DNA of 64,000 bases from Lepidodermella squamata (taxonomy: Eukaryota > Animalia > Gastrotricha), in NCBI GenBank assembly GCA_047495785.1, contig JBLDXI010000015.1:1984001-2048000 (forward strand). Direction: 5' to 3'. A model generated the notes under the pieces. It had not been told where the DNA came from, made no database searches, and saw only the letters and a list, made by a program, of their open reading frames with translations. How positions within the stretch are numbered: position 1 is the stretch's first letter; the number at the start of each line of letters is the position of its first letter. Shown piece by piece: positions 7,383-30,715 of the stretch. The position numbers were made by a program, and so were the translations under genes.

Positions 7383-7452
7383 GGCTGAAAGCTGAGATTT
7401 TTGATGAATTTTTCCTGTGGAATCGATTGATTTAAGAGGGCAAAAAAGTTAG

Positions 7453-8069: not shown

Positions 8070-9568
8070 ATGAGATTTATTTCCTTCAAGCTGATTCTAA
8101 TCGCTGCCACTTTTTGGCACTGCCTACAAGCTCAGCCTGATCCTAACGAGAAATGCCGAGAAACCATTGATCGACGAAACTCGAAGGACCTGTACGCTGA
8201 CCCAAGCGATTGCCACTTCTACTTCCAATGCTTTTACGTCAATGAAACAGCTGCTGTTGGTTTTCGACGCAACTGCCCGGCCGGCCAATACTTCAGCGAA
8301 CAAGTTTTGACTTGCATGGCTGAAGGGCCGACGTCATGTGGCAATGATAGATGCGAAAACCAGACGATAGCGATGATCGGTTGCTATGCATCACCAACAA
8401 GCTGCTCTACTTACTTCATCTGCGCCCATGGATCGAGCTTCCAGTTTTGCTGCCCAGCTGGTACTGCCATCAATGAGACGACATGCTTGTGTGACGCGAA
8501 CCCGAACTGTAGTGATGTTTGCACATTACCCGAGACAACATCCACCGCAATCACTCCACCGAGTTCAAACGCAACTCATTGCACGGATCCCTATGGAACT
8601 TTGCTGCAGCCAGTCACTGGTCGGCCCGACCAATACATCGCCGTTGGACCTGATGGTCAAGAAACCGTGATGAACTGTGCCCCTGGTACAGCCTTCCGTC
8701 TCGACGATTGTGCTTGTCATGACTTGACAACAATCGCCAATCCAACGTCTGCTCGTCAGTGTTTGATTTTTCTGCCCTTTGACCAGGACTTCATGGACAA
8801 GTCTGTACATGAATTTATGACTGATGTTATCGGCGATGCTCAACTTGAATCGACCGCATGGGCGCATGGTTCCGGATCGCTTCATCTCAACGATGGCCGC
8901 GTCGAGTTACCAGGTCTGAAAGGCATCGACCTCGACAAACATGCCTCGTGGTGCATTTTCTTCAGGTAAGCTTTGGTATGAATCATATTTACTATAAATT
9001 TTCCTAATTTTTAGATGCGACTCTGGTTCTGCCGCCAACCCTTACGCTTGCCTGCGTTCTGGTGGATTGATTTCGAACAGCGGAGGTCATGCTGATGATT
9101 ATTCTTTCATCATGTCGACAAATACCGACCAAACAACCCAGGCCCGTGTCGATGCTAACATAAGACTTGTGAATCCAAGCGATACGATTCAGCTCTCTTA
9201 CCCCCCGACAGCTGCCAACGGTTTTAACCAAGCCTGTGTTACCTATGATGGCGCGCAAGCTACACTTTACGTCAATGGGGTATGAATTTCTCCGTAATTT
9301 TAGGCCGTGAATTATGATGGATTGATTTTGATATTAGGAAGTTGTGCAACCCTGCGCCAATTGTGTCAAACCCAGTCACGGTGGCTCAGTTGCTATTTCG
9401 CAGCATCCTTACACAATCGGGTCGGATCAAACATTCGGTAACTTCACTGGCTACATTGATGAGGTGCTGATCTGCCCAACTGTGCTGAGCAATGCTGAAG
9501 TCAGCGCTCATTTCACCGGCGATTACGCTTATCTGGCCAATCAAGGTCTTATACCCCAGCAGCCTTAA
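8070..9568 (+). CDS. secreted chitin-binding (CBM14/peritrophin-A-like) + LamG/concanavalin-like protein, Pif-like architecture
   Basis: signal peptide MRFISFKLILIAATFWHCLQA; ADPSDCHFYFQC...CPAGQYF...C and two more Cys modules; Thr-rich linker; LamG motifs (TYDG...LYVNG, TIG, FTGYIDEV...LS..EV). Exons 8070-8965, 9015-9279, 9338-9568. Confidence 0.85.
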
Positions 9569-10561: not shown

Positions 10562-12529
10562 ATGTCGTCGAAATTATTTCTCGGTGGGCTACTGGCTTTC
10601 GTAGCTGCCGTAGCGAGTAAGTTTGATGACTGAAATCCCAATGTAACATCTATCGGTTTCTTTCAGGCGCGGAGGAGTACGATTATTATTCATATGTAAA
10701 CCCATGGGCAGCGCCTGCTGCTGGCTCCGATGACAGTGATAGCTGGTGGGATGTGACAACTCGGGCTCCTAGTCCAAGCTCATGGGGAAACCAGAAAAAC
10801 CCAAGTGACGATTGGGGCCGTGATGACTGGGACAGCTGGAATTCTCCGAGCACTGATAACAACTGGCAGGAGCCAGCTCCAGTTCGGGGAGCTCCTCAAC
10901 AGAACCGCATGCCAGCCCCATCCCCGCAAACGAGCATGCCCTACGGAAGCTGCCGTGCGTCAACTTGCAGCTGTTACACCCAGTGCGGTCCACCGGGCCC
11001 ACCGGGACCTGAGAATCGTGGCCCACCTGGTCTTCAAGGCCCGCAAGGTGATCAAGGTCCCACTGGAGATCGCGGTGAGCCTGGTTGTCAAGGTAATCCA
11101 GGTGCTCCTGGTGGCCCCGGAAGACCAGGTCCAGCTGGAGACGATGGTACGGCGGGCCCATGTGGCCCAGATGGTGTTCCGGGTGAGACTGGTAAGGCTG
11201 GTAAGATGGGACCATCTGGTCCTCAAGGTCCTCCTGGCAATCCGGGTCCGGCTGGTAGACCTGGTAAAAATGGAGTTCCTGGCTGCAATGGAACCATGGG
11301 TCGACCTGGCCCAGCTGGCCCAGATGGCTACCCAGGACCGGCTGGCCCGAAAGGCCCTCGTGGCCCTGATGGCCGCCCCGGTCGCCCTGGTGATGCTGGC
11401 CGCGAAGGCCGCCCTGGAACGCCAGGACGCCCTGGTGGTGATGGACAAGCCCAAGAAGGTCTTCCCGGCCCTACTGGCCCGGTGGGCTCACCTGGCCCCG
11501 ATGGTGCTTGTGGTAAGTAGTTCTTTTGTCAAATAAATTCAATTCTTAATTTTTGTTAATCATAAGGCCGCGATGGTGACGTTGGAAGCCCTGGTCGTCC
11601 TGGAGCCGATGGTCGCAAAGGCCCCCCTGGCCCGAAAGGCCCCAAGGGACGCGCTGGTTCAGTCACAACTCCGGGCTGCTTAACAAACTCAGTTTACGCT
11701 CGCCACTCACAAACGACCGAAGCTCCTCAGTGCCCGAATGGACATATGAAGCTGTGGGACGGCTTCAGCCTTCTGCATACTGAAGACGAGGCTCGCGCTA
11801 ACGTTCAAGACTTGGGTAAGAATGACGCTATTTTATTTTAATGAAAATTGTGAAAACACCGGTTCCATTGATAGGTCGCTCTGGAAGCTGCTTGCGTCAA
11901 TTCGAAGTTATGCCTTTCATGTTCTGCGGATCGAACGGTGTTTGCAACTGGGGTGCCCGTACCGCCACGTCTTACTGGTTGGCAAGTGAAACTCGCCAGC
12001 AGTACATCGGTCTTTACGGTCTGGACGACTCGCGTGAACAGCCACTGACTCGTGAAGATGACATCATTCGCCAAATTTCGCGTTGCTCTGTATGCTTCGC
12101 ATGCGGACCAATCATCACCGTTCATTCGCAGAACGCTAGCGTGCCAAGTTGCCCGGATGAGAAGTGGAATTCCCTCTGGACCGGCTACAGTTTCACTATG
12201 GTAAGCAGTGAATTTCAAGCATACGGCGCAATCTCTCTCATAATAAATTTTTCTAGCACTCCGTTGGTGCTATGGGTGGTGGTCAAATGCTGGACTCGCC
12301 TGGCAGCTGCCTTCCAAGCTTCCGTCACCATCCTTACATTGAGTGCACAGCTACTGGCCAGTGCGCTTACTACTCGGAAAAGACGAGCTACTGGCTCGTT
12401 GCTCGTGATCAGGTTCCTTCGAAAATGCCAGGCGTCGGCGAGTCTACCTTTTCAAAAGCCCGCGATGACGTTATGCGGACGGTGGGTCGTTGCCGCGTGT
12501 GCTCACAAGATATTGGCATTCAAATGTAA
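10562..12529 (+). CDS. short type IV-like collagen chain 1 (signal, Cys motif, ~208-aa Gly-X-Y, NC1)
   Basis: exons 10562-10616, 10667-11512, 11567-11815, 11875-12200, 12257-12529; [19 protein letters not shown]; NC1 motifs [53 protein letters not shown]. Confidence 0.92.
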
Positions 12530-14365
12530 ACGGGAGCTTCAAATTCGCGATTTTATACACAAGATTAGCAAGCATATTCGTTTCAACAATCATTATTTGT
12601 CATTCTTGTTTCATGTTTGTATTACACCGAATCAGCGCTTTTATCTAAAATGGCCAGCAAGAACAGCAGCGTAAAATATCTCTCTCTCTACCTCATCTCC
12701 CGAAATTGTTTGAAACATTAACTCTAGGCATTAGATCGCCTCTTTTACTTCAGCTCATGTGAAAATGAGAGTCGATTCTTGCAGCAATTTTACACCGCAC
12801 ATGTTTCGTTCTGCAAAAGAGAACATGATAATGTAAAAAAAACCTGATGGATTTATTTTAACGATAATAAAACACAACTTTGAATGGATTATTGCGGTGA
12901 AAAGTCTTCCAGTTTTATTTAGTGTCATAACCTCAAGTGGCTTACAAATCATGGAACCCTGAATGTCGCCCTGAACCCTGGTGGAACCATGAATAATCAT
13001 TGAAAACCGAATTACATTGTTTTTGGCCATGTCGTGCGGGGGGTCATTTCGCATTTCGCGCCGAAGTCATCTGAACCATGAACATGAAGAGGAGTAATAC
13101 GCCGCATCCAATCTGGCTACTTAGTTAGCTGTGTTTGGTTAGATCGGGTATGAAGCGTCTATGATAAAAAAAACAGCGCTGGATGTTACTGGCGAAGTGA
13201 AAGTTATAGAGCGAGTGCGCAAAAACGCAAGAACTGGGCTCAGCGGTCAGCTCTCAGCAATTACACAATTTTGAAAAAGAAGCCTTTTCAAAGCTAATAT
13301 ATAAATCATAACATGCATTGTTTTTTGTTTTTCTTTGAAGAATATTTTTTATAAAATATGTTTTCGACCTTGATGTTGACCGGCTCGGCCCGGGGCTCAA
13401 AAATCTTTTGGCAGCTTGTCTGCCAGCTTCAGGACCCCTGCTAGTTACCGGTGATTGGCAATTTTTCCGAAATGCCGGCAACCGGCAAATGATTGATTTC
13501 CATGTTGCTGTTCCATGTTCGCTTTGAGCGTCTTTATTCAGGCATAACTATCGCTTTCCTGCTGTTATAATTCGAATTATCCGCTCCCCAAACGTTCGTG
13601 AATGGAAGTCATCGTACGAGAGACGAGAGAAAGAGTTGCGTTCTTACGTTGTCCGCTTTATGCGCCATGAGAGGCTCACTCTCCCGTGCCTCTGGTTATG
13701 TTTTCGACGTTATGCACCAGAATCTCATTTTTCCATTCCGGGTTGATTTTCGACGAAAGACGGTTGCGCTCGTCAGCTGTGACCTGTGAAGCCGTTTCCA
13801 ATTTCATTGGGTAGAAGTGGGGTTAAGGTTTCAGATTATGGTCATTTGGGGGGTGGGGTGCCCTCTGAGAGTGAGCCAACTGAGAGTTGAGAGTGAGCTC
13901 TCTGGCAGCGACGCCCTCTAAGCGGGCACTTCTACCAACGAGATTGTAGGAAGCCCTGTGACTTAAGTGAACTTTAAAGCATTTAAAGGAAATTGCAAAA
14001 ACTAGACATATAATCACCTTCTGGCTATGAGTTTATCCATTTATGAGGTCTGAAAGCAGAACTGAGTGAGCCGGTGTAGTGCCCTAGCCAACAGCATGGA
14101 ACATGGAAGCCCTATAAGTTTGTTCTTGACACTTGAACTAAGGACTGGAAAAATCTGCCATAGTCTTTGCATGCCTGATGTACAGCTGTATAAACACGAA
14201 GTCTGACTTTTTCCTAAAGTAGAGTGAAGAATACATCTCGCATTGCCTCGTGAATCGTCTTCTTGACAATTTATTCTTAGCCATAGGGGCTCAAAGCAAT
14301 CTTCCTGCTCCTTCACCTTCTCTCTTGATCGAACGGAATATTATCTGTTTCTTAGGCGTTTGAAA

Positions 14366-17300
14366 ATGTCTATTTTATCATTTGTTAATGGATTAGAGCT
14401 CGACGGCAACAACTTCAACGTAAGTATATGGTGTAGAATGGCGTAAACTAGAGTTTCGAAATGATTTCCTTTGTATAGGATGGTTGTCTGGCATCTGACT
14501 CAGTTCAAAATCTGACGTCTCTCCACACACTCAAACTGAATAAAACATGTCTGTCCGAATTCCCTCGGCGCATTTGTGACCTGGGAGGTCTTAACGAGGT
14601 TTATTTATGTCACAATCGCCTCAAGACCGTGCCATCAGACGTCTCCAAGATGCTGGAACTCAGAAACTTCGTATGCCGCGACAACGGAGTGAATGAGCGG
14701 CGAATTTCCCCGCAGCTATTCAACCTGCCAAACCTTACCATTCTAGATCTCAGCCGAAACGAAATATCAGTGCTGCCATCCGAGCTAGATTCGGCTACCA
14801 AATTGATAGTACTCAATCTTTCACATAACGAGATCGAGACAATATCAACTCAGTTGTTCGTTAACCTGACCGAGTTAACTTATTTGGACTTGAGTGATAA
14901 TAAGCTTAGTAAGTTGATTGGCTCAATCTTTTTCTGTTGTGCTAAATTCATTTGATTTAGTTTCACTACCCGCTCAGCTGAGACGTCTTACCAACTTGAA
15001 AGTACTGAAGTTGAGCAATAATCCGCTTGTTCATGCTCAGCTAAGGCAGTTACCAGCTTTAACAAAGCTAGAAGTGTTGCATCTTCGTAACACTGATCGT
15101 AATGCTACAAACTTTCCGACTGGATTGGAAACGCTGACGAAATTGAGAGGTAATATATCTTGAGATTACCACTGGACAGCTTTTGAGTTTTTCGATGTTT
15201 AGAACTGGACATTTCTGCGAATGGTCTGCAACATTTTCCGGATGCTGTGCATTCTCTCTCAGCGCTCGAGATTTTCGATATAAGCGAGAATGAATTAAGC
15301 GAATTACCAATGAATATCGCCGATTCGTTCCCACGCCTTGAGGTGTTAAACTGCTCGAGAAACAAACTATCGTGCTTACCACCCTCATTTACTCGATTAA
15401 CTCGCCTACGAAGGCTTTTCGTTAACTCGAACCAGCTCACTTTCGACGGACTGCCGGCGGGCATCGGCAAGTTGAGTGAACTGGAAGTTTTCAACGCGGC
15501 TGATAACCAGCTTAAAGCAATACCCGAAAGTTTATGCCGCTGCCCGAATTTGCGGCGAATTGTTCTTAATTCGAACCAACTTGTCACGTTACCAGCTGCG
15601 ATTCATCTAATGGAGCTTGACAAGCTGGAAACGGAAGATAACCCAGATTTGGTCATGCCGAAACGGCCGCCTGACGCGACAATAGGCAGTGGCATCGAGT
15701 ACTACAACATCGATTTTAGCCTGAAGGCGCAACTGAAAGCTGCGATGAATTTACCGGCGCAAAATAGTCCGGATTCTAAGTCGGACTCGAAATCTCGGAA
15801 GTTGCGATTAATGCGGCAGTTGAGGCTAACCGGGTTGGCAGGGGGTCGAACTGCTGATACGGAAACTGAGTCGGGAGAGAAAGTTCTCAGGGCGATGAGG
15901 CGAGTTACTGAGGATAAGCAAAAACCGAACAAAATTGACGATGAAGACGAAAATTCGCTGAATCTATCGCACCAACAACAAAGCAAACAACGGTGGGATG
16001 AACGGCTGGAGAAACCGAATATTAATTACGAAAAGGCGAAATTATTCTCGCCGGACGTTGGCCAGGAAGAGGGGTTGGAGGTTTTTGAAATCGCTGATTT
16101 TCAGCCTGTGCCTGTGGATCCGATGGTGTTTGGGACTTTCTACACAGAAGATTGTTACGTTGTTTTATCGACATCTCGCAGTGAACAGTCGCAATTATCA
16201 TGGCGGATCTGGTACTGGTTAGGCCGGGAAACGACCCTGGATAAACAAGCCTCAGCTGCGATTCACGCTGTTAATCTGCGAAACATGCTAGGCGCGAGTT
16301 GTCGAACAATTCGTGTTGAAATGTTGGAAGAACCGGATGAATTCAAGGAGTTATTCCTCGAATATGGCGGTGTTGCCCTGTTACAGGGTGCTAATCACCC
16401 GTCCGGGTTTTACACGGTCGTCGAGGCGAAGCATGAGACAAAAACGTACCGAGTGCCTGATGCGGTTAACTTGCGCCTCGAGCTTGTTGAAAACAACGCC
16501 TTATCCTTCGACCCGCGATTCTGCTTCATCGTCGACGCTGGTCTAACAATCTGGGTGTGGCATGGAGCGCAGTCTAACGTCGTGTTGCGGTCGAAAGCTC
16601 GTCTTCTAGCGGAGAAAATCTGTAAAATTGAGCGGAAAGGCCAGGCGCAAGTTCTTCAGGTCGTGCAAGGCCGCGAGCCTGATGAGCTTTGCGAGATAGT
16701 CATGCCTGGTTCGAGCCGTGATAGCGTCTCTGAACACCTGGTTGAAGACCACGGAACGCCTCGTTTATACTCGATATCTGTCGGCAGGTCTCGAATTGAA
16801 ATCACCCAAATACAGGCGATGCGGCCTAACACGCAGTTGTTATCTCGAGCCGCCTTAAATTCGAAATCTGTCATGATCCTCGATTGTTATTCCGAGGTGT
16901 TTGTATGGCTGGGTAAGAAATCGAGGCGGCTGTTTCAAACTGTTGCTGTTCGTTTAGCTCGTGAGATGAGTCAACTGATTGATCGGCCTGGGTATTCTGC
17001 GATTACGATTTGCACCCAGGGCACGGAGCCGTTGGCGTTCCGGTTGAGATTTGCCGGCTGGGACGACGTGATGCCGGTTGATTTCAGGCGAACGGCGCAG
17101 TCGATTGCGAAACGTGGAGCGGATATGGACGAAATTATGCGGCGAGACCAGATCAAGGTAATTCCACAGCTACTCTTTTTAAAGGGTCTTACTTTGAGCG
17201 GAACCAAATTTTGTAATTTTCAATGGGCCTGAAACCACTTTTCGAAGCTTTCAAGGATGTCGTGATTGATCGGCATAATTTAAAATAAATTATCCTTAAA

Positions 17301-19706
17301 TTCAGCGTAAAATTCTGTATAAGACGCATTCTTCACAATAGAATTCATACATTGCATTATTGTCGTAGATATTCGAAAAGCGAGCTTTTGCTTATCTAAA
17401 ATTAGTTTCAGCAACAGACAATTTGGTTTCGCTAAAAGATATTCTGTTTTTTAAATCTTGCAAATTGTTGGAGACAAGTTACTAATTTTTCCGAATTTAA
17501 CCAATGAAGAGCATTTCCTATACCTTGTTAACGGTTTCATCGAAAAATGTAGAATTTACGGAAGAAAACCCGGCAAAAAATCCGATGGTAACTGGTAACC
17601 TTTAATTATCACTATTTTGCCCGATTAGATCGAATTTCTCCACATTATTTTGTCCCTGTTGACAAGTTTCATATTTGATTGCCATTTTCATGAAATTTCT
17701 GAATTTTTTGGCTATGGGTCAATACATATAAAATTCGATTAATATAAAGAAAGTACTACACTAATAATAGAAAATGTTCTTGCTACGTACCGTACGTAAA
17801 GATGAGATATCTTTATTATTTTGAACTTTTTGATCCCATTCCCATATATTTCGATGCGTTACATTATTGTACATTTTTTTAAGCTGATATGGTCCTTTTC
17901 ATATTATTTTTCAGAGTTGTCATTTTTCATATTTTTCTCAATTATAATTTGAATTAAAAATTACCACTCTGCTGGCAGAAAATATTCGATGATTTGAAAT
18001 TTAAAATGGAAGAAATGAAACTAAAATATTCAAACCCAGGAAAAAATTGTTATGTTCGGGTTTCCAATATAAAACAATGCAACAGTTTTCAAGACATGAA
18101 AACATATTTTTGATAATTGATGATTTGAGAAAATATAAATTCTTGAGAATTATGAGCCCGGCCGAAGGCTGTAAAGGCTATCTTTGAAAAATAAAATAGG
18201 CGCCGTCCGAAATTTTAAGGTGGATTTATTTCGAGGGCGAATTTCTTAAGTTTTTACGATTTTTGCAATTTATCGAATTTTACGATTTATTATCAATTTT
18301 TGTTATAAATTTTCTGTTTTTTTCAGATCAATCTTGCCGCTCTGTTTGCGCCTCGTCAACCAATTATCGACCTCGAGCAATGCGAAGATATCGTTGCTGA
18401 AGTGCGTAACAACCTCGATTGGATGAAGTGTTTCGTCCTGGACGGCAAAAAATTCGTCCCACTGCCCGATAAAGAACGCGGGCACTTCTTCTCCGGCTGT
18501 TGTTACGTATTCCTGTGCCGGTTCTGGGAGACCAGTGACAGTGAACTGAGCGACGAAGTCGAGTCAAAACGAAGCAGCGATGAAAACAAATCAAACACAG
18601 CGAACTCATCATCGAACGATACGTTGAATAAAGAACACCGAAGCTCCACCTCAAAATCGCCGACGCCGTTCGATTTGAACGACGGCAGCTCGCGGGGCGA
18701 CAACAACACGGACGAATCGGCATCGCAGGACGGAAGCGGCCGGTTCCGGTGTAAAGTCTTCTTCTGGCAGGGCCGTGATGCGTCGAAGTTAGGCTGGCTC
18801 ACGTTTCATTTCAGCATGCAGAAAAAATTCGAGGACGCTTTCGGCGATCTGCTCGACATTGAACGCATCAGCCAGCAACAGGAAACGTACGAATTTCTCG
18901 CCCTGTTCCACCCGATGTTTGTTATTCACAACGGAAATCGACCTTCTCGGGGCGATGGCGTCCAGGAACATGCGTTAACCCCGGATTTGTCGTTCTATGA
19001 AATCAGATCAAACGGCTGCCCTCTCACGACGCGTTGTATCGAGTTGGAAAAGGTTGAAACTCGGTTGTTATGCTCAAATTTTTGTTACATTCTAAAGGTG
19101 CCCTTCTGGAGTTCGGCCCGCCAAAGCCCGGAGAAGGTTGTCGAGGAAAAGTCGGAAATTCGAGAACGCGGCGCTGAGGGCATCGCCTACGTCTGGGTCG
19201 GCAGTTTATCGACGCAAAATGACGTGAGAATCACCGAGTTAATCGCGAGAAATATCTTCAAATCCGATTCGTTCGCCGTTCAAGTTGTCGAGGAAGGCAA
19301 TGAACCGGAAAATTTCTTCTGGCTCGCGTTGAACGGCCGACCGCCGGCAGGGTTTTTCCCGAGAAAGGCCGAATTTTTGCATCGTTCACGGCTATTTCGC
19401 TGCTCCAACGAAACTGGCGAGTTTGTCGTGTCCGAGAAATGCATCGATTTTTGCCAGGACGATTTGTCAGATAACGATGTGATGATTGTTGATACAGGCG
19501 ATACTGTCTATTTGTGGATTGGTGCTCGATCGAGTGTTATCGAGGTGAAATTTGCGTTCAAATCGGCGCAGATTTATATTCAGTACTTGAAGTGTAAACA
19601 CCCTGAGGATCCGGTGCGGCGGCTGGCGCTAACCGGCCGCGGCAAGGAACCGCAGGACTTTTGCAAGTGCTTCCACGCCTGGTCACACCACAAACCAGTC
19701 TTCTAA
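14366..19706 (+). CDS. FLII: flightless-I homolog (LRR + gelsolin repeats)
   Basis: N-terminal LRRs, [53 protein letters not shown]; exons 14366-14419, 14479-14908, 14961-15149, 15203-17157, 18327-19706. Confidence 0.96.
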
Positions 19707-22230
19707 AATTCAATATTCCTAAAATAAAAATGGCTATTTTCGAGCTGAAAATTGAATTTTCTACTCGAAATTGTGGTTATACTCCTAAAAATGGAACAAA
19801 AAATAAAATATTCCGCTTATTGTTGAGATCTTGAACCGCTTCAAAATTTTCATTACGAAAATGCCTTGTAGTTGCTGAAAAAGTCGTCGGAAAACATTCA
19901 TGAAATCAAATGGCTAGTCTTTTCTTCAATTTATATTCTATAACAACCTGTTGAATGTAATTGCTCTCGTCGCTTCTTATGATAATATGCTCAGTTATAA
20001 CGCTTTCGTGGGACGGACTAGAATTATTGTAAAATAATCAACCCTGCATGCGCCGGTTTTTCTGAGAAGATTTCTCATTAAAAAATTGTTGCTTCCGAAT
20101 GAAAAATGAGTGCTGCGTTATATCAAGTGGGCTACCTGAAATTAATGGGCTCTTTCCGCTTTTTTCGCCTCTTAATTAAATGGAACGAATATTTATGAAC
20201 GAAATGAAATCTATCCATGTGATCGCTTGTTATAAAAACTTATATAATATTATTGTTATTATTATTATTGTAAGCGTCCGTGTACTATAGCTGTCATTTT
20301 TTGCCTTCCATTTTTTTCTCTCGTCCTCTCCGGTTTTTTTCACCACCTGTTTTTCGTCTTCTCTGCGCGCACCTCGTTACAATACGGACCAAGTCTCGAC
20401 TTTTCCTTTCTTTATGCTGTTGATTTGTAATTTTAATTGCGAAAAATACATTATTCGGAAAAATGCTAAGCAATAATTAGCATAAACTATATTATAATTC
20501 TTATTATTTAAACCGTGAAAAAATATTGAAAAAAAACATGCCAAAGCCGCCTTGCGAGAAAATAAAGATAAAAATGTTCTCCTAATTCGTTTTTAAATGT
20601 GGTTGTTTGAAACGATTATTCCAGACACTTCAGGTGTATTGCAAGTGGTAACGTTTTTCGTCAAGTAAAAATACGTTTTTCCTCGAAAATTTCCGGCAGG
20701 CTGATTTTCCTGCAAATTTTGCGGAGTCTATTTTTAAACAATTTCAGGCAATTTTAGAAACGAGTTTGCCCAACTGTGGACAATTAGCGCTGACTTGCAC
20801 ATGCATGACGAGTTTCAAAATTTGCCCTTGAAAATAAGGGTGGAATTTTGAAGAAAATTAAAACAGATGGAGCGTCATTTTTTAATATTTTACAGTACCC
20901 GATTTTTCACCGGATTTTCAAGTAGACGCCCTGCTAAAACACATCGTCGTAATTGTAGTTTCTCTCGAAATGCAGATAGCAGATAGCAGAGGTGAGATTT
21001 ACATATTATATAGCCTATATAGTATATCGTAGCCTAATTAGCATTTTAATCAGATTGCCTATCCAATTAGTTCAATATGCAGAAGTCTTAATAAAACTAG
21101 CTTCTCAGCAATCGCAGAAAACAAAGCCATTTTTTAGGCAGAAGTGATTCGATTGCTATAGCTGGAAACACGGTAAAAGAAACGTTTTTGGGCTTTTCGC
21201 GCGACAAAAATTTAATTCTGTTTGTTTTTACCATCGCAATTTTGATAACATTTGGAAACTAATTTTAGCCAGCCTTTCCTCCTTCAGGATTGGCTCCTCA
21301 AAACGTTGAATTTATTGTGATTTTCGCCATTTAAACATGCTTCTCCATCATCGTTTAAACTTTTATAGCATATTAAAAAGGGTTTAATTATTGGGAATCT
21401 GACTGAATTGCGTGATCGATTACGATCATCACTCGCATGCCAATTTTCATTAGAAAATATGTCATCATTTCAGAGTTATAAGGGGGCAGAGAGACATTCA
21501 AAGTTAAAATTTTCTGCAACATCGATTTGCGCACCAATTACCTTGAGTTTGATGTCGATCGAAATTTGATGAGACAGAGAATTCTATGAAAAAAATATAC
21601 CCATGTTTCTAACGTCCTTCCTTCCCCGGACACTTAATAACCTTCAAATCCCAGAGTGTCCAAGGCTACCTTATCTACAATTACCTCGCGTTCCGCTACT
21701 CAACTTGACAGAGTTGGAAACAGGCGTGAATAACCTCAATTTTTATTTACGCTTTCTTATCCCGACTGAATCACACCTGGGTAGCAGTGGAGCGTGACGC
21801 TAATAATAGACGCGCCTCGCGGTAAATACATCGAATTGACGCATTAGAGGAATCCCGATGTTGACGAACCTGATTAGCCAGACACTAAGTCCAGGGCCTA
21901 ACTACGCGAGTGACAGGGGCGGGACACACTATTTTTTTAATCGTTCCAGCTTATGTATCAGTCGTGCTCATGCGCAAATCGAAGGATCTTGTTTTCCGAG
22001 ACGCGCTCGATTTGTATTGGATTAATTTTCCAGCACGTAGAAATAAATCCTTACTCTAGCAGCTGTGCGTAAAAAACAAGGGTGAATCACGCAATATTCG
22101 TAAAAAGCCTCTTAATATCGCTGAGTAGTATTTAAGAAATTCTTCCCTCCGCTATCACTCGAATTTCGAAAAACAACAGCCTGAAAATACCTTTTTACGG
22201 ACATAAATAGCCCTCAGATTTATATTATAT

Positions 22231-22835
22231 ATGGATCAAAATACTTTAAATTCTTCGAAGCGTGAGAGGAGTCGCCTTAGCAATAACCACAGACCAAATA
22301 TGACGGCTGTGGTCGTAGTGGCGAGTCCGAGAACATCTAGGCGAAACGAAGATCGGTCATCATTGCCCCTTTCTAACACAGCAACATCTTCACCTTGGTC
22401 AGTGAGGCGAACGATGAGCGAGCCACCTCGACAACTTTGGACTCAACAGAAGCAAGGCCAATCGACTACAAATCAAAGGCCAAAGCTGAAGCGCTATAAG
22501 AAGAAGGCAGCGGTAAACTTCAAAGGCGACTCCATGGAGACGATTATGGAGGAAATTAGTTCCGTTAGTCCACTGAAATTTTAAAAAACTTCAAATTTTC
22601 GAAATTTCAAATTTTTCATGAATTTCAAAAATATTTATTTTATTTTCAGGATGATGAAGCAATCAATGGCTGCCCTAGCAGGAGCCTGTCCAAGCAATCG
22701 TCGCAACAGTCAGACGATAGTGGCGTCCCTCGATTTCGACTACCTGTTAGCGACGCTTGCCTAGGCCACCCTGAACTTTACAAGGTGCAGACAGTGATAC
22801 ACGGTCACGGATTGCTGCGCGTTTTCGCACCTTAA
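22231..22835 (+). CDS. hypothetical Ser/Arg-rich protein, two exons
   Basis: ORF 22231-22563 with gttagt donor, AT-rich intron, ttttcag acceptor, in-frame exon 22650-22835 ending ...HGHGLLRVFAP*; no family recognised. Confidence 0.55.
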
Positions 22836-23220
22836 AACTGCAATATTATAACAAAATCGATAGAGCTGATCAACGCGTAATTTTAATACGTCGTGTGATA
22901 ATTTTATTATTGAGACGATGAACGAAAAAACACAACACAACATCATGACGACGCAGACATTCACTTTCTCCACACTCTAATAATCGAATAATTGAAATAA
23001 TTTTTGCTGAAATTTCAAGAGGTGTTTTTTTACCATATATATATATATAACGAATAAAATTTGAGAAAAAATTGCTTGAGAAGTCGTTTCTTTTTGTATA
23101 AAAATAAGGTGAGACAGGCGGCTATTGTTTCTTCCCGATCTTTTTTTTTAAAGGCAATGTGATTTTTGTAGCCTAATCAAAATTGCTGCATTCTTCGATG
23201 ATTTTTTTGACGACTTTTCT

Positions 23221-25269
23221 TTATCGACGACGGCTGGTCATTTCCAACGAGCAGACGCGGCATCGGCCGACGGTCGAGATGGCTTCCTCACGCTTTTTCA
23301 CAACGCTGACGCGGTTCGGGTCGATGGTGTTGGTCGGCATCTGGTCGAGCCCAGCCAACCAGTAGGTCATCTTCTCGGAATAGTAAGCGCACTGCCCGGT
23401 TGATGTGCACTCAATGTAGGGGTGGTGACGGAAGTCTTCCATGCAGCTGCCGGGCGATTCGAGCGGCTGACCGCCACCCATCGGACCAACGGAGTGCTAA
23501 ATTTAAAAAATTTAATGTTTTAATTTTTTGAAATTTTTGAAATTTTTTAAAAATTTCAACGTAAAATTTTGAAATTTAAAAAATTTAAAATTTAAAATTT
23601 AGTTCAGAACTCAAGTTTCATTCTTGAAATTCTTGAAAATTCTATTTCTGAAATTTTAGATATTTTTTGAAATTTTTTGAAATTATTGAAAAATTCGATC
23701 AAAAGTCTTTGTAATTTTTTTATGAAGTAATTTGACAGAATCTGAAAATAAATCACCATGGCCAAGCTGTAGCCGGTCCAGAGAGAAGTCCAGGCCGGGG
23801 ATGGGCACTCCGGAACTGAGGTGTTTTGAGAGTGGACGGCCATAACAGGGCCGCATGAAACGCAGACTGAGCAGCGCGAGATCTGGCGCTTGATGTCTCC
23901 AATGTCGTTCAACGGGCGTTCACGCGAGTCGTCGAGGCCGAACAGGCTGATGTACTGCTGACGTTCGTTCGACGCCAACCAGTAGGACCGGGCTGTGCGG
24001 GCACCCCACGTGCACACTTCGTTCGATCCGCAGAACATGAACGGCATCGGCTCGAACTCCTTCATGCAGCTGCTGGCGCGGCCGAGATCTTGAACGAATG
24101 AGCGCGATTCGTCCTCGGTGTGCAGTAAACTCCAGCCGCTCCACATGTTCTTGTGTGATGGGCGGGCGCAGGGTGGCACATCGGTCGACTGAGAGTGACG
24201 GGCGTAGATGAAGTTGGCGACGCAAGTTTCTTGCTTGTAGCACGAAGCTTCTCCGGCGTCACCACGGGGTCCTGCGTCACCACGAGGGCCAGGGCGACCG
24301 TCGGGGCCTGGGTACCCAGGAGCACCCGGGCGACCATCAGGGCCCGGTTGACCTGGCTGACCTGGCTGACCTTTCTGACCTTTGACACCAGGACGGCCAC
24401 GAGCGTCGGAGCCACTTGGGCCAGCAGGGCCTGGGCGACCAGGGCGGCCGGGTTGACCGGGAGAACCGGGAGCACCGGGGCCACCCTTATCACCCTTAGC
24501 ACCCATGGGGCCGGGAGAACCATCGCGACCATTCGGGCCTTTCGGGCCGCAGGGGCCATCGCAGCCAGGCTGGCCATCAACGCCGTTCATGCCTTTTGGG
24601 CCCTGTTGACCCTGAGGGCCCATAGGCCCCATGGGACCCATGCGACCAGGGGCACCCGGCTTGCCGACTGGGCCAGGGTTGCCAGGGGATCCAGGTGGGC
24701 CGCGACGTCCCTTAGGGCCACGAGGTCCGTCTGGACCAGGCGCTCCCGGATCACCGGCCTCACCAGGGGTGCCCGGGTCACCTGGGTTACCACGCTCACC
24801 CTTCGGGCCGGACTGACCCGGTGGGCCAGGAATAGACCGGCCCATGGGACCAGGCGGACCCGCAACATCCGAGCACCCACACGCCTTATTGCAAGTTCCC
24901 TGTTGCTGCGGGGTGTCGCAGTTCGGGTCGCTCGGGTTCTGGCGATTCTGCTTCCACCGCTTTGGCGCCAACTTGCCAGCACTGGAACCATCAGCGCTCG
25001 CCTCGACTTCCGTTGCCTCCCCCGCCTTTTCGGTCGCCGGCAGCTCTTCAGTCAACGGCTCGGGCTCGGCCAGTTTTTCGGCCTCAGCCGGCATCTCCTC
25101 CATCATGGCGTCGGCATTCTCCTTCGGCACGGCGTAGACACCCATCGCCATGGCATCTAAATTAATAATTAAAATTATTTAAATAAAAATAAAAATAATG
25201 AAATGGCTTACCCTGAAAGACAACGGCGGTGCCTAAGACAACAAGGAGATAGCTCCAATATTGTCTCAT
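23221..25269 (-). CDS. short type IV-like collagen chain 2 (~205-aa Gly-X-Y, NC1)
   Basis: signal exon [19 protein letters not shown] (25212-25269), main exon ~23758-25156, last exon 23221-23496; full two-lobed NC1. Confidence 0.93.
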
Positions 25270-25760
25270 GCTTCTTAATAAACACCTAAAAAGAGCACAG
25301 AACATTCAAGTCACAATGCGTTATTTTCTCAGGTTTTGAAGTGGAGAAGTTTTAATTGGGCAACAGTTTTTACAACCAACAAACATTGATATTACAAAAA
25401 AATGACAACAGCAACAAAGTCGTGTGATGGTAAGTGTGCAAAATTTTGTCGATTTTCATTCACTCTCTCACATTTTCCATTCACTCACTTTCATATATAT
25501 ATAATAATAATAATAACGATAATATAACATTCAGACGTATAATTTTATCGAAAAATATCATCATCGATCCTGTTTCGGCCAGGTAAAACAAAATAATTTC
25601 TTTTCTGAGATTATTTTTCAGCTAGCTTTCTTTTAAAGCAAAAATTAACTTGAGTTTTTTTGTACGTTTCGTTTCGATTAGTATTGTGCGAAGTAGTTGC
25701 GAGATTGGCATTGCGATTCTACAAATTTTCTGACGCGTATCTTTCAGCTCCAAACTTGGT

Positions 25761-28540
25761 TTAGTTGCCTGTAAAAATGGGAGAATAATGACAAATCAAA
25801 TTAGAATGAGGAAAAAGAAGGAAAATTGGAGATGCCGGGGTTTGAACCCGGGACATCTTACATGCAAAGCAAGCGCTCTACCACTGAGCTACATCCCCAT
25901 ATGACTTCAAGGAACCTGGAGCCTCTTTCAATCGCAATGGAACCTTTCCGAAGTTGGAAAAAGGTTCGACGAGGTTCCGGCGGGGTTCGAACCCGCGACC
26001 TTCTCCGTGTGAAGGAGACGTGATAACCACTACACTACGGAACCTGGATGATGGGTGACACCCAGGGTTCTCAATAAGGTCATTCTCCAAAGCTGGGATG
26101 AAGATAGGAGAAAAAAATAGTTCCCTGACCGGGAATCGAACCCGGGCCGCCGCGGTGAAAGCACGGAATCCTAACCACTAGACCATCAGGGAGGATGAAC
26201 ATGGAACCTAATTGGGTTGTGACCTTCGTTAGGAATTAGGTTCCCATTGTCCGGTCAGGGAACTATTTTTTTCAAAAGTTGAAGCTGCCCCCTGTGAGGA
26301 TCGAACTCACGACCTCCAGATTATGAGACTGGCGCTCTAGCCAACTGAGCCAAGGAGGCGCTTGTGGTCATCCTAGGTCCTATTCTGATTTCCTAATTGA
26401 ACATCGAAGGATTGAAGCTAGGGAAAAGAGAAGCCGAGGCCCAGACGGGGATCGAACCCGCGACCTTCTGTTTACAAGACAGATGCTCTACCACTAAGCT
26501 ACTGAGCCGGCTGATAGCTAAGCCTATCGCTCTAGGACTTAATAGCAGTGATATTTACGATATAAAAAAGGTACAAACCTGCTCCGCAGACGAAAGCATT
26601 GGCGGGCTGGTAGGAGCAGACGCGGCACTTGCCAACACGCGACGCGACATCGCCGCGCTTGACCGTGCTGTTCGGGAAGGTGGCGTCGCTCGCGTACAGC
26701 CAGTACATCATGTAGTCGGGCCAGTAGTGGCAGTACCGATTCGAGTCGCACTCGACGTAGGGCGTATGCGAGTGGTAGCGCAGGCACGAGCCAGGGCTGT
26801 CCAACTGCTGGCCAACACCCGCCGCTCCGATGGCATGCATCAGGAAGGAGTAGCCTTCCCACAGCGACACCCACGACCCGTATCGGTTGCCCTGCGGGCA
26901 CGCCGGCACTTGCGTCGACTGCGAGTGGAACGCCATAACAGTGCCCGGCGCCATGCAAACCGTGCACCGACTGATGTGGTTCATCAACTGCGCCTTATTC
27001 TGCACGATGCCCATCGGCTTGGCGACGCTTGGTTCAATGTCATTGGCGTGTTCGACTTCGTACTGGTTGGTCGTCAGCCAGTAAGACGAGGTGGTTCTTG
27101 AACCCCATGAGCAGACTTCGTTAGCCCCGCAGAACATGGTTGGCTGAGGGTCGAAACGAGGCAAGCAAGAGCCACTGGCGCCTAGATTCTCACCCGCGGC
27201 ACGGCCGTCGTCTTGCAGGTGGAGCAGGGAGTAGCCGGTTGAGATCTGGACGTGGTTTGGCGGGCAGGTTGGCACGGTGCAGCGTTGCGAGTGGATGGCG
27301 TAGACGTAGGCGGAGCATGAGCTGATGTCACGGTTCGGTTCATCTGGGCCTGGGGCACCCATCGGGCCCACCGGACCGTCAGGACCGCAGTTGCCATCCG
27401 GACCGGGTGGGCCAGGTCGGCCAGGGTTGCCAGGGCGGCCGGCAAGGCCCATGTTGCCCTTCTCACCACCCGGGCCTTGGTTACCGCATTGGTCGTCGCC
27501 GATTTCACCAGGAGTACCCGGAGCACCTATAATCATCAATTCATATAGGTTATATCGAGAAAGTTAACTGGATCTTACCTGGTTGACCATCTGGACCAGA
27601 CGGGCCCGGGCGGCCTTCGTCACCGATGTCACCCATTGGGCCAGCCGGGCCAGCACAGCCATCAGCACCCTTATCACCCGGAGCACCTGGGGCACCCTAT
27701 AGACAGACACCGAACTGTTATCGAAACCTTCAAACCTGGGTGGGATGACTTACCGGAGCACCTGGACATCCATCGCGGCCATTGTCACCCGGAAGACCAG
27801 GAATACCATTCGGGCCCTGAAAGAAGTAAGATTATAAGCCAATATCATAGCTAAATTTTTGGGATTTACGCAAGTTCCAGGGGGACCTTGGGGTCCGTCG
27901 ATTCCTGGGTTACCTTGAGGACCTTTGCGGCCTTCCGGACCCTGGCGACCTGGGTCACCTTGATATCCTTTCGGGCCCTATAAGAAATATTGAATATTCA
28001 ACAGCTCGGAAAGCATGTTAGAAAAACTTACAGCGCTGCCATCAAGGCCACGTGGACCAGGGTAACCGGTAGCTCCAGGAGGACCGTTGGGTCCTAGAAG
28101 AAAAATTCAAATGGTAAAAGATCGAAAGACGACGCGAAAAACGTACCTTTATCACCCATGGGGCCCATAGGACCGCAGTCACCCACAGCACCCGGTGGGC
28201 CCATGGGGCCCGGGCCACCAGGTGACCCGCGCTGGTTGAAGCAGTCGCAACGCGTGCAGCTCGCCTCTTCGTTGAACAGCATGTCCATGAACATAACAGC
28301 GCTATCGACGTTCTGCGCACCCTCATCGGCCAACATCGCAGTTTCGATGGCGGACGCTTCTTCGGCCAGGGTTTGCTCGGACGGCGGCCCGGCAGCGGCT
28401 ACGGGCGCCTCCTCCGCGAACGGTTGCTCACCCGGTGGTCCAGCTGCAACTTCGGTCTCTTCAGCCCGAACTGATAGCATGGCGAAAGACAAGACGAGCC
28501 CACATGTCAGCAGTGTTAGCTTCACTACCGACCGCTTCAT
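25761..28540 (-). CDS. short type IV-like collagen chain 3 (~206-aa Gly-X-Y, NC1)
   Basis: MKRSVVKLTLLTCGLVLSFAMLSVRA signal, CTRCDC motif, small Gly-X-Y exons, NC1 exon ~26579-27526. Terminal micro-exon 25761-25768 (G-N-stop) inferred from gtttgt donor at 26578 and ccatttttacag acceptor; unspliced stop would be at 26532. Confidence 0.88.
25827..25898 (-). tRNA. tRNA-Ala(TGC), cassette C
   Basis: GGGGATG/CATCTCC-A acceptor with G3:U70, CTTGC-TT-TGC-AT-GTAAG arm. Confidence 0.93.
25972..26044 (-). tRNA. tRNA-Val(CAC), cassette C
   Basis: TCTCC-TT-CAC-AC-GGAGA arm, GGTTCCG/CGGAACC acceptor. Confidence 0.93.
26121..26192 (-). tRNA. tRNA-Glu(TTC), cassette C
   Basis: TCCCTGA/TCAGGGA-A acceptor, CT-TTC-AC loop; one C>T giving a G:U pair in the anticodon stem. 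Confidence 0.9.
26286..26359 (-). tRNA. tRNA-Met(CAT), cassette C
   Basis: same sequence as the other Met copies. Confidence 0.93.
26437..26508 (-). tRNA. tRNA-Thr(TGT), cassette C
   Basis: same sequence as the other Thr copies. Confidence 0.93.
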
Positions 28541-29746: not shown

Positions 29747-29828
29747 CGCTGCCAGTAGGATTTGAACCTACGCGCGGAGACCGCATCTGATTTCAAGTCA
29801 GACCTCTTAACCACACGGGCATAGCAGC
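29747..29828 (-). tRNA. tRNA-Ser(TGA), cassette D, possibly defective
   Basis: two D-arm substitutions vs other copies (GCCCGTGTGGTTAAGAGG vs GCCCGAGTGGTTAAGGGG), including conserved A14. Confidence 0.7.
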
Positions 29829-29993
29829 TTCGTGAACAATGCAGCATCAGATAGCATATTTATTGTATTTCGCTGCTTCACCTGAATTATACTCGCGGAG
29901 AGATGATTCGATGGAATGTTCCCGGACAGAGGAAACAGTTTGAAACCAATGGTTCTCAACGGGACGGCTTTTTGATCCGTGTTGTTTCAAGCC

Positions 29994-30065
29994 GGCCTAG
30001 TGGCCTAATGGTAAGGCGTCGGCCTCCGGAGCCGGAGATTGTGGGTTCGAGTCCCATCTGGGTCG
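29994..30065 (+). tRNA. tRNA-Arg(CCG), cassette D
   Basis: intact cloverleaf, T-run downstream. Confidence 0.93.
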
Positions 30066-30136
30066 CGATTTTTTGTCCTCGTAAACACACTCATTAGCTC
30101 ACTCTACGAAATCAACGATTAACTTAGCTATCAGCT

Positions 30137-30208
30137 GGCTCAGTAGCTTAGCGGTAGAGCATCTGTCTTGTAAACAGAAGGTCGCGGGTTCGATCCCCGT
30201 CTGGGCCT
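30137..30208 (+). tRNA. tRNA-Thr(TGT), cassette D
   Basis: intact; single D-loop T>C. Confidence 0.92.
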
Positions 30209-30285
30209 CGGCTTCTCTTTTCCCCAACGTCAACCATTCAATCTTCAATTATGCGATGTAAGTAGAATCCAGGGTGACCACAAGC

Positions 30286-30359
30286 GCCTCCTTGGCTCAG
30301 TTGGCTAGAGCGCCAGTCTCATAATCTGGAGGTCGTGAGTTCGATCCTCACAGGGGGCA
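30286..30359 (+). tRNA. tRNA-Met(CAT), cassette D
   Basis: intact cloverleaf. Confidence 0.93.
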
Positions 30360-30431
30360 GCTCCAACTTTTTGACAATGGGAACGTAGTTCCCAAAATAG
30401 GTCACATACCAATTAGGTTCCAGGTTCATCC

Positions 30432-30503
30432 TCCCTGATGGTCTAGTGGTTAGGATTCCGCGCTTTCACCGCGGCGGCCCGGGTTCGATTCCCGGTCAGG
30501 GAA
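30432..30503 (+). tRNA. tRNA-Glu(TTC), cassette D
   Basis: CCGCG-CT-TTC-AC-CGCGG arm, intact. Confidence 0.93.
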
Positions 30504-30571
30504 CCATTTTCCTCCACAATTTTCGATATTCTGCATTACATGATCTTACTGGGTACGCTTGGACTCATCAA

Positions 30572-30644
30572 GGTTCCGTAGTGTAGTGGTTATCACGTCT
30601 CCTTCACACGGAGAAGGTCGCGGGTTCGAACCCCGCCGGAACCT
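30572..30644 (+). tRNA. tRNA-Val(CAC), cassette D
   Basis: intact cloverleaf. Confidence 0.93.
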
Positions 30645-30715
30645 CGTCCAACATTTTTCCAACTATAATAAGGTTCCATTGCAATTAAAAGAGGTCCATT
30701 GTCCCTTAAGATCAT

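Follow-up and report, generated by a model that had tools for sequence, protein, structure and literature searches.

Three clustered genes of the gastrotrich Lepidodermella squamata encode a real and new variant of type IV collagen, in which a helix one-seventh of the canonical length is combined with a complete collagen IV NC1 domain. On the evidence of their sequences, the products of these genes, here called g1, g2 and g3, are likely to serve as chains A, B and C in a single secreted miniature type IV collagen about 60 nm long. The genes lie in a window of 64,000 nucleotides, the whole stretch of DNA analysed here, and their coordinates and those of their protein features are collected in Table 1. 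All three gene models are intact, with introns that are GT-AG throughout and coding sequences divisible by three, and each product matches Pfam Collagen and two stretches of C4. The models bear out the architecture described in the earlier note, namely a signal-like start, an acidic N-terminal region, a Cys cluster, a short helix and a two-lobed NC1. g1 and g2 are 10.7 kb apart on opposite strands, with a Flightless-I-like gene between them. A tRNA cluster in the window includes positions 25859-25901. A promoter motif search of the 400-bp regions upstream of the three genes found no common 8-mer or longer.

Table 1. Genes and protein features of the three mini collagen IV chains, with positions in the window.
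Feature	Positions	Strand	Details
g1, mini collagen IV chain gene	10562-12529	+	582 aa; 5 exons: 10562-10616, 10667-11512, 11567-11815, 11875-12200, 12257-12529
g1 N-terminal Cys cluster	10945-10986	+	4 Cys, C-x4-C-x-C-x3-C; abuts helix; 7S-like
g1 collagenous domain	10987-11664	+	208 aa; spans intron 11513-11566; G4G interruptions NR, QE (QE 11452-11457)
g1 in-helix Cys, then in-helix N-G-T sequon	11284-11295	+	Gly-Cys-Asn-Gly-Thr-Met-Gly
g1 junction Cys and NC1	11665-12526	+	two C4 lobes, both HSQ, 12 canonical Cys and one extra in C-x-x-C-x-x-C
g2, mini collagen IV chain gene	25269-23221	-	577 aa; 3 exons: 25269-25212, 25156-23757, 23496-23221
g2 N-terminal Cys cluster	24861-24902	-	C-x3-C-x-C and one Cys 9 residues upstream
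g2 collagenous domain	24246-24860	-	205 aa; interruptions IP, AR (AR 24399-24404)
g2 in-helix Cys	24561-24563	-	second Cys 4 residues on
g2 junction (two Cys) and NC1	23224-24245	-	spans intron 23497-23756; extra Cys in C-x-x-C-x-x-C, like g1
g3, mini collagen IV chain gene	28540-26532	-	579 aa as modelled; 6 exons: 28540-28147, 28093-28032, 27977-27870, 27816-27754, 27696-27579, 27526-26532; 3' end uncertain
g3 N-terminal Cys cluster	28229-28270	-	C-x2-C-x-C, preceded by conserved hydrophobic motif SAV[ML]FMDMLF
g3 collagenous domain	27342-28228	-	206 aa, encoded in five exons; QC (27486-27491) the single interruption
g3 in-helix Cys	27766-27768	-	
g3 junction Cys and NC1	26535-27341	-	NC1 in one exon; conserved C-terminal tail ending ...FVCGAG

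Recounting the collagenous domains returned the lengths given previously for each chain, together with the interruptions. The helix of g1 reads as three triplets, NR, 48 triplets, QE and 17 triplets; that of g2 as three triplets, IP, 47 triplets, AR and 17 triplets; and that of g3 as 52 triplets, QC and 16 triplets, so that both the early interruption common to the first two chains and the late one in all three were recovered, the latter at the positions first reported. From the first Gly of the helix to the first HSQ motif of the NC1 there are 221, 221 and 222 residues in g1, g2 and g3, and with the distance to HSQ as the only anchor, the Gly frames of the three chains coincide over 47 and 16 triplets. 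A Cys within the helix is placed exactly 122 residues before the first HSQ in all three chains and in g2' and g3', the orthologues of g2 and g3 in a relative. The Gly-Cys that had been noted for the first two chains is thus present in both, but it is not limited to them, as g3 has it too. The N-G-T sequon that follows this Cys in g1 agrees in type with one reported from the collagen IV 7S region (PMC7619536).

Ahead of the helix, each chain begins with a hydrophobic, signal-like N-terminus (as judged by eye), which in g1 and g2 occupies its own first exon, and continues with an acidic extension of about 100 residues; the N-regions hold 14, 19 and 17 Asp and Glu against 7, 10 and 6 Lys and Arg in g1, g2 and g3, respectively. 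The collagen-IV-like Cys motif proposed for this region is found directly before the helix in every chain. The 7S/NC3 segment of collagen IV, through which tetramers form, is rich in both Cys and Lys. With three to four Cys immediately before the helix, in a segment that is not Lys-rich, these clusters may resemble it, in motif type only.

The NC1 phylogeny that the earlier note had called for places g1-g3 together with metagenome relatives in a lineage-specific clade (support 97.9/99) that is neither alpha1-like nor alpha2-like. Within this clade g1 and g2 are sisters (89.7/94) and g3 belongs to a separate subclade (100/100); the node that places mid-length chains around g1 and g2 has moderate support (53.4/89). 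The orthologue of g2 in the relative (P0001, loci L001/L008) is 60% identical to it, and the adjacency of g3' to g2' is kept there, with helices of 205 and 207 aa. Synonymous sites are saturated (pS 0.75-0.86) and pN in the NC1 is 0.14-0.16; on these substitution patterns, selection is purifying. A g1 orthologue with a helix was not found in the relative, either in a word search with g1 exon 2, which was swamped by generic collagens, or in a metagenome scan with g1 exon 4, in which the sole hit was L012, a degenerate g1-like fragment that lacks helix exons and is disrupted by an in-frame stop and a frameshift. The late interruption, 17 triplets from the helix end, and the Cys at the junction of helix and NC1 occur throughout the family, including mid-length paralogues with helices of about 457 residues. 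The late interruption had been put forward as a clue to co-assembly, and we rejected it as evidence for the trio: because it is ancestral to the entire lineage-specific family, it is by itself uninformative on this point.

Co-assembly of three register-conserved chains into a protomer of about 60 nm, as the earlier note envisaged, is supported by the placement of charged residues along the helices. Aligning the chains by their distance to the NC1 only, we scored 27 compositions and registers with a contact model that counts axial pairs from a Y-position Lys to an X-position Asp or Glu, unweighted, and rests on the assumption of a common register at the NC1; its contact offsets come from triple-helix geometry and from data-driven peaks. 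With g3 leading, g1 in the middle and g2 trailing, 14 of the 17 Y-position Lys face an X-position Asp or Glu on one specific other chain. Any other ABC register gives 1-7 such pairs, and homotrimers of g1, g2 and g3 give 0, 4 and 1. This count was reached in none of 20,000 triplet shuffles (null maximum over the 27 combinations, 4.7 +/- 1.3), and g3-g1-g2 was also the best of 162 slid registers, with the runner-up at 9. Under the "full" scoring variant, the one in which two-chain combinations were scored, it reaches 15.5, compared with at most 9.5 for those combinations.

The pairs are directional and resolve into separate offset peaks over a background of 0-2: g1 to g2 at +1 (4/4 Lys), g2 to g3 at +2 (7/8) and g3 to g1 at +1 (3/5), no such peaks being seen when the chains are compared with themselves. 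Binomial tails for the directed legs are 8e-6, 3e-4 and 0.012, g3 to g1 being the weakest leg (p ~0.01), and +1, +1, +2 is the sole closure of a one-residue stagger. Comparable peaks occur elsewhere in the family, from g2' to g3' at +2 in the relative (5/8 Lys) and from m1 to m2, neighbouring mid-length paralogues on locus L002 of a relative, at +1 (25/27 Lys). Lys at the Y positions of collagen IV usually carries a hydroxyl group and sugars, modifications that may make salt bridges weaker. Because near-saturated Lys pairing arises in only that one of the 27 compositions and registers, the order g3-g1-g2 is favored, and the pattern of residues suggests that g1, g2 and g3 probably form an ABC heterotrimer.

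The same principle is known from designed ABC heterotrimers, whose composition and register are set by axial pairs of Lys with Asp or Glu that run from the leading strand through the middle one to the trailing one (PMC7824840; bioRxiv 10.1101/2024.05.21.595195). In those Hartgerink-type peptides and SCEPTTr designs, Lys(Y) to Asp/Glu(X) pairs specify the assembly and competing homotrimers are left without pairs. The resemblance is one of function and not of family membership: the designs are synthetic peptides of 30 residues with no nucleation domain, whereas in g1-g3 the pairs extend along a natural 206-residue helix that is combined with an NC1 trimerisation domain and putative Cys knots.

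An alternative that we consider unlikely is that g1, g2 and g3 each form homotrimers, the matched length, the late interruption and the Cys levels going back to a short ancestor and being maintained because selection acts on rod length. The family-wide late interruption and junction Cys, mid-length members included, are what such descent would leave; a short ancestor is possible because the mid-length node is only moderately supported; and a g2 homotrimer, which may form as well, has some axial pairs, their number ranging from 4 to 10 by scoring variant (4 with Lys, 8-10 with Arg and reverse pairs). However, descent alone does not set the Lys of one chain opposite the acids of another at +1/+1/+2, and homotrimers of g1 and g3 fall far below the 14 pairs of g3-g1-g2. 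The cysteines point the same way: at the junction and at level 122, g2 has two Cys and g1 and g3 one each, and the odd number of 3 that a homotrimer of g1 or of g3 would have is a poorer fit than the 4 of a mixed trimer.

Somewhat less probable again is a heterotypic assembly that departs from 1:1:1, for example g2-g2-g3 or g3-g1-g1, or several protomer types drawn from these three chains, as in vertebrate alpha1-alpha6. A2B is the usual composition of canonical collagen IV, adjacency in the relative is limited to g3' and g2', and g3-g2-g2, g2-g2-g3 and g3-g3-g1 lie above the shuffled expectation (z ~3). Against this, the ABC register is clearly the best, its 14 pairs contrasting with no more than 7 in the remaining ABC registers and no more than 4 in homotrimers, and each of the three directed legs has an offset peak of its own.

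It is improbable that the models are incomplete and that the real transcripts contain many more Gly-X-Y exons or join neighboring genes, in which case the chains would not be short. The 3' end of g3 is uncertain because g3 and g3' diverge exactly at the GT after the conserved ...FVCGAG, which leaves some room for this reading. Yet each model opens with a signal-like exon of its own and closes with a full NC1, the introns of 50-260 bp are free of Gly-X-Y coding, and g2 is almost a single exon. The orthologues in the relative share the architecture and lengths despite different intron positions, and the alignment of g3 with g3' is free of gaps across the g3 exon joints.

Collagen IV NC1 domains are about 230 residues long and consist of two C4 subdomains (PF01413). 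The complete two-lobed NC1 reported for each chain is confirmed by two PF01413 matches per chain (E 1e-18 to 1.5e-57, the latter for the g3 NC1), together with the two HSQ motifs and all 12 canonical Cys columns, the hallmark of this domain being an HSQ in each C4 subdomain and 12 conserved Cys (PMC5395295). Against PDB sequences the g3 NC1 gives a full-length match (E 1e-52), and the top 42 PDB fold matches of its AlphaFold model (pLDDT 81.6) are all collagen IV NC1 domains (TM 0.85-0.88). Membership of g1-g3 in the spongin short-chain collagens, suggested by the short helix with a C-terminal NC1-type domain and by a cnidarian "short-chain collagen C4-like" cluster at rank 8 of an Atlas feature search, is ruled out for practical purposes by both HSQ motifs, all 12 Cys, the PF01413 match (E 1e-57) and sequence identities of 37-49% with canonical NC1s, since spongin NC1s, which are only remotely related to the bona fide collagen IV NC1 of g1-g3 (Aouacheria et al. 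2006; Fidler et al. 2017), have no HSQ, share 7 Cys with collagen IV next to 3 private ones and give no PF01413 match (PMC5395295, PMC12749355). The NC1s thus fall outside this described short-chain family. The network-forming collagens VIII and X are likewise short-chain (~130 nm) and non-fibrillar with a C-terminal trimerising globular domain, and collagen VIII is heterotrimeric, but both are vertebrate families, and the C1q domain that makes up their NC1 has no relationship to C4.

Canonical collagen IV (alpha1-alpha1-alpha2, alpha3-alpha4-alpha5) has in common with g1-g3 a signal peptide, a Cys-rich N-terminus before an interrupted Gly-X-Y helix, and the NC1 motifs and fold described above; its heterotrimers, like the one proposed for g1-g3, combine two NC1 subtypes and are the products of gene clusters. 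Apart from the separate phylogenetic position of g1-g3, the differences lie in the helix, with about 1400 residues and about 20 interruptions compared with about 206 residues and 1-2 interruptions, in the extra Cys of g1-g3 at the junction, in the helix and in the NC1, in their acidic N-extension, and in the residues of NC1 assembly. The chloride switch consists of Arg76, Asp/Glu78 and Glu175, and the chloride ring of Arg/Lys179 (group 1) and Phe/Tyr64, Asn66, Arg76 and Tyr/His189 (group 2; PMC6527180). In g1-g3, Arg76, Glu175 and Phe64 are kept, and positions 78 (Ala/Thr), 179 (Thr/Asn), 66 (Gly) and 189 (Thr/Met) are replaced. Of the sulfilimine pair, canonical Met93 is Glu in g1 and g2 and Ala in g3; canonical Lys211 is Ala in g1 and Lys in g2 and g3. 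Given the absence of an intact Met93/Lys211 pair and of chloride-switch and ring residues, any head-to-head joining of these NC1s, whose fold is kept, would have to proceed by another mechanism.

In the heterotrimer that we favor, the three NC1s would come together in the ER, where chain selection would fall to them, with g1 and g2 closely related and g3 distant, and the helix would then zip from its C-terminal to its N-terminal end, as in all collagen IV. The strand order, with g3 leading, g1 in the middle and g2 trailing, can be read from the helix sequence itself, nearly all Y-position Lys being placed for an axial salt bridge to an X-position Asp or Glu of the next chain. Cys at three matched levels (the N-terminal cluster, the helix 122 residues before the NC1 and the helix-NC1 junction) could tie chains and protomers together. 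Together, the N-terminal cluster, some 100 helix residues and the in-helix Cys next to its N-G-T sequon resemble a 7S-type overlap; if this reading holds, the chain may be regarded as a shortened collagen IV of which just the two end-modules remain. For a wider proposal we see about even chances: that in this natural collagen near-complete directional Lys to Asp/Glu pairs along the helix encode chain composition and strand order, by the rule that chemists follow in designing ABC heterotrimers, and that it is one module of a genome-wide set in which each small cluster would supply a single mini collagen IV heterotrimer, its chains matched in length and its rod length particular to that cluster (~206 residues, ~455 residues and others), giving sulfilimine-free, Cys-cross-linked networks of defined mesh.

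How chains are chosen and strands registered in natural collagen heterotrimers is a long-standing question that is hard to address on helices of 1,000-1,400 residues. A rod of about 206 residues is small enough to express, to fold, and to crystallise in pieces or image, and its combination with a complete collagen IV NC1 and a helix that points to one register makes the question directly testable. Collagen IV, usually seen as an invariant scaffold of about 400 nm, has diversified into short forms in at least one invertebrate lineage, with the chemistry of chloride and sulfilimine assembly lost and cysteines gained, which bears on the ways in which networks of the basement-membrane type can be remade to have different cross-links and mesh sizes.

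Each of the three miniature collagen IV genes in the window (g1, g2, and g3) encodes a collagenous stretch followed by two C4 stretches (Pfam). The gene models were assembled by hand and checked by script, with all introns GT-AG and all coding sequences multiples of three; database searches used single exons as queries, and the joined models were used in scripted analyses only. The chains share 51% (g1-g2), 43% (g1-g3), and 40% (g2-g3) identity. In all three, a hydrophobic, signal-like start leads into an acidic N-region of ~100 residues, and a Cys cluster immediately precedes the helix, as the earlier note had described; the collagenous domains of 208 (g1), 205 (g2), and 206 residues (g3) agree with its counts to the residue. 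Some 100 residues of helix separate the Cys cluster from an in-helix Cys (in g1 within the motif Gly-Cys-Asn-Gly-Thr-Met-Gly), an arrangement by which the N-terminal half of the chains may be read as 7S-like. The in-helix Cys had been noted in g1 and g2, where it is indeed present, but it is not limited to them, since g3 carries one as well (level 122).

The window is animal DNA, with Flightless-I-like LRR+gelsolin, EML, ankyrin, and CBM_14 genes and short GT-AG introns. The CBM_14 locus just upstream of g1 is possibly another matrix gene. The window also holds repeated tRNA cassettes on either strand, with no fewer than 44 tRNA genes in total; one cassette separates g3 from g2. The genes are typically arranged as Arg-CCG, Thr-TGT, Met-CAT, Glu-TTC, Val-CAC, Ala-TGC, Val-TAC, frequently together with Ser-TGA, and copies of the same tRNA have identical scores.

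Coordinates of the gene models and other features in the window and on scaffolds of related genomes
Feature	Location	Strand	Remark
g1 (582 aa)	window 10562-10616, 10667-11512, 11567-11815, 11875-12200, 12257-12529	+	hand model
g2 (577 aa)	window 25269-25212, 25156-23757, 23496-23221	-	hand model
g3 (579 aa as modelled)	window 28540-28147, 28093-28032, 27977-27870, 27816-27754, 27696-27579, 27526-26532	-	hand model
C-terminal extension of g3 and its orthologue g3'	window 26532-26600; L001 9560-9665		
Flightless-I-like gene (LRR + gelsolin repeats)	window 14629-19706	+	between g1 and g2
ORFs with chitin-binding Peritrophin-A domain (CBM_14)	window 8019-9568	+	stretch after the domain LamG/pentraxin-like by eye only
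ORF with weak reverse-transcriptase match (RVT_1)	window 34318-35214	+	under Pfam cut-off; probably a retroelement remnant
tRNA cassettes	window 456-1235, 7166-7936, 25826-26508, 29747-30778, 32303-33802, 46701-47506, 49033-49106, 52245-52991, 54477-55431	both	
m1 and m2 genes	L002 6101-8269 and 8850-11488		identical Cys levels, matched interruptions
P0156 gene	L005/L006/L007; L006 4259-7114		separate scaffold
g1-like NC1 fragments	L012 (JAAUYM010030612.1) 1178-1824 and 2645-2850		

The complete two-lobed NC1 claimed for each chain is borne out: both C4 stretches are present, with two of two HSQ motifs (one per lobe) and all 12 canonical cysteines in g1, g2, and g3. These domains are 37-49% identical to canonical NC1s and match the solved alpha1-alpha5 NC1 chains over their full length in a PDB sequence search. 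The g3 NC1 as modeled by AlphaFold (pLDDT 81.6) has 42 significant PDB neighbors, every one a collagen IV NC1 (TM 0.85-0.88). All three domains are thus strictly of the collagen IV NC1 type. The earlier note had asked whether they might instead fall inside a described short-chain family. The NC1 of spongin short-chain collagens is without HSQ, shares only seven of the cysteines, and has no PF01413 match (PMC5395295; PMC12749355), whereas g1-g3 have both HSQ motifs, 12 cysteines, and a PF01413 match, which rules out spongin membership.

In a maximum-likelihood NC1 tree (LG+G4; SH-aLRT/ultrafast bootstrap support), g1, g2, and g3 form one clade with metagenome and Logan relatives (97.9/99), outside the collagen IV groups of alpha1-like and of alpha2-like chains. 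Within it, g1 is sister to g2 (89.7/94), and g3 belongs to a subclade of its own (100/100). The g3 NC1 matches only 815 representatives among 1.84 billion proteins at E <= 0.001, of which only four, all fragments, exceed 50% identity. The family includes two mid-length members with helices of ~457 residues, m1 (L002_orf1) and m2 (P0002 gene), which are neighbors on scaffold L002 (scaffold_303) of a relative. A more basal member, the P0156 gene, adjoins nuclear receptor and actin genes; it retains Met93 and shows a signal peptide of its own, Gly-X-Y repeats spread over several exons, and an insertion of 7 residues following the first HSQ.

Orthologues of g3 and g2 (g3' and g2') lie adjacent and in the same order in a related metagenome organism (ENA ERZ23486764 and sister samples; L001, L008), with helix lengths kept at 207 and 205 residues, respectively. 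Synonymous sites are saturated between orthologues (pS 0.75-0.86), and non-synonymous differences per site amount to 0.14-0.16 in NC1 and ~0.34 in the helix and N-region. The g3/g3' alignment is gap-free across the g3 exon joints, with the introns of g3' at other positions, which supports the g3 splice model. These comparisons indicate that g2 and g3 are real genes under constraint. Downstream of g2', the relative carries ANF_receptor, EB/EGF, and MAM-astacin genes unlike those of the window, so synteny is limited to the g3-g2 pair. A C-terminal extension (...QPANAFVCGAG) is common to g3 and g3', whose sequences then part precisely at a GT; beyond this point lies either a small unrecognized last exon or a poorly conserved aromatic tail with an N-x-T site in both. 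A word search and a metagenome scan yielded no g1 orthologue with a helix. Scaffold L012 holds decayed g1-like NC1 fragments, the last exon 82% identical to g1, with an in-frame stop, a frameshifted stretch, and helix exons absent nearby, features that mark the locus as a pseudogenized copy within a related genome.

The helix of g1 comprises 3 triplets, an NR interruption, 48 triplets, a QE interruption, and 17 triplets; that of g2 runs 3 [IP] 47 [AR] 17, and that of g3 52 [QC] 16. The early interruption in g1 and g2 and the late one in all three are thus as the earlier note reported, but its use of the latter as a clue to co-assembly does not stand. The late interruption also occurs 17 triplets before the helix end in m1 and m2, and canonical alpha1-like chains have 28 triplets beyond their last interruption; it is therefore ancestral to the family of g1-g3 and m1-m2 and, on this comparison, is no evidence that g1, g2, and g3 belong together.

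A more discriminating signal comes from the interchain register. Chains were numbered by distance upstream of the first HSQ as the sole anchor, which lies 221 (g1), 221 (g2), and 222 (g3) residues from the first helix Gly. In this frame, Gly falls at matching positions in g1, g2, and g3 through 47 consecutive triplets and through 16 more past the late interruption. The strands within a triple helix are shifted by one residue, and a Lys at Y, the third residue of a Gly-X-Y triplet, can form an axial salt bridge to Asp or Glu at X, the second residue, of the next strand. In designed peptides, composition and register are both set by pairs of this kind (PMC7824840; bioRxiv 10.1101/2024.05.21.595195). 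Contact offsets were derived here from the one-residue stagger: because the axial rise is then equal for all three contacts, they are +1 triplet from leading to middle, +1 from middle to trailing, and +2 from trailing to leading strand.

Counting axial Lys->Asp/Glu pairs over all 27 ordered compositions gives 14 for g3-g1-g2, 1-7 for the other five ABC registers, and zero, four, and one for the g1, g2, and g3 homotrimers. The same register ranks first in three further scoring variants (with Arg, reverse pairs, and like-charge penalties). A geometry-free offset profile peaks at +1 for g1->g2 (4/4 Lys), +2 for g2->g3 (7/8), and +1 for g3->g1 (3/5) over a background of 0-2, so that 14 of 17 Y-lysines are paired in g3-g1-g2; these peaks are absent in self-comparisons and in the reverse cyclic order. 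The legs have binomial tails of 8e-6, 3e-4, and 0.012. In 20,000 shuffles of triplets within chains, the best of the 27 combinations never reaches 14 (its mean is 4.7, sd 1.3, maximum 13), and the unslid register is the maximum among 162 whole-triplet slidings (next best 9).

The distribution of cysteines is consistent with a mixed trimer. A helix Cys stands exactly at level 122 in g1, g2, g3, g2', and g3'; g2 has a second at 118, which is at another position in g2' (133). Both here and at the helix-NC1 junction, g1 contributes one Cys, g2 two, and g3 one, and thus a mixed trimer would have four per level, sufficient to join all three chains by two disulfides, compared with three in a g1 or g3 homotrimer. 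Further helix cysteines in g1 (188, 163, and 47) and g3 (205, 139, 104, 65, and 32) have no partner within the protomer and are candidate links between protomers. An extra NC1 Cys (C-x-x-C-x-x-C) is common to g1, g2, and g2', and the tail ...FVCGAG to g3 and g3'.

The NC1 residues of canonical hexamer assembly are largely substituted. In alpha1 numbering, checked by Met93 and Lys211 landing on M and K in canonical rows, Phe64, Arg76, and Glu175 are retained in all three chains, Asn66 is Gly, Asp/Glu78 is Ala/Thr, Arg/Lys179 is Thr/Asn, and Tyr/His189 is Thr/Met; Met93 is Glu in g1 and g2 and Ala in g3, and Lys211 is Ala in g1 and Lys in g2 and g3. The chains therefore lack the chloride switch and both chloride groups, as defined in PMC6527180, and the sulfilimine pair. 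NC1 hexamers that do not depend on chloride have been described in Ecdysozoa, Rotifera, and Ctenophora (PMC10656227; PMC10694668); by analogy, a g1-g3 hexamer is possible, but its mechanism would differ from the chloride/sulfilimine one.

Our search of the literature found no description of short chains of collagen IV carrying a canonical NC1, nor of a natural helix-encoded ABC register. Taken as a whole, the sequence evidence shows that g1-g3 are a genuine new form of type IV collagen, which probably assembles 1:1:1 as a heterotrimer in the register g3-g1-g2. In the related organism, g2'->g3' peaks again at +2 (5/8 Lys), with helices only ~53% identical. In the m1/m2 pair, whose Cys levels are identical (480/476/474, 369/368, 172, and 12), 25 of 27 Y-lysines of m1 face X-acids of m2 at +1 (tail 5e-12). 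Full three-leg closure is seen in the short trio g1-g2-g3, and the peaks in these other neighbor-encoded chains suggest that directional interchain charge complementarity is characteristic of the family as a whole.
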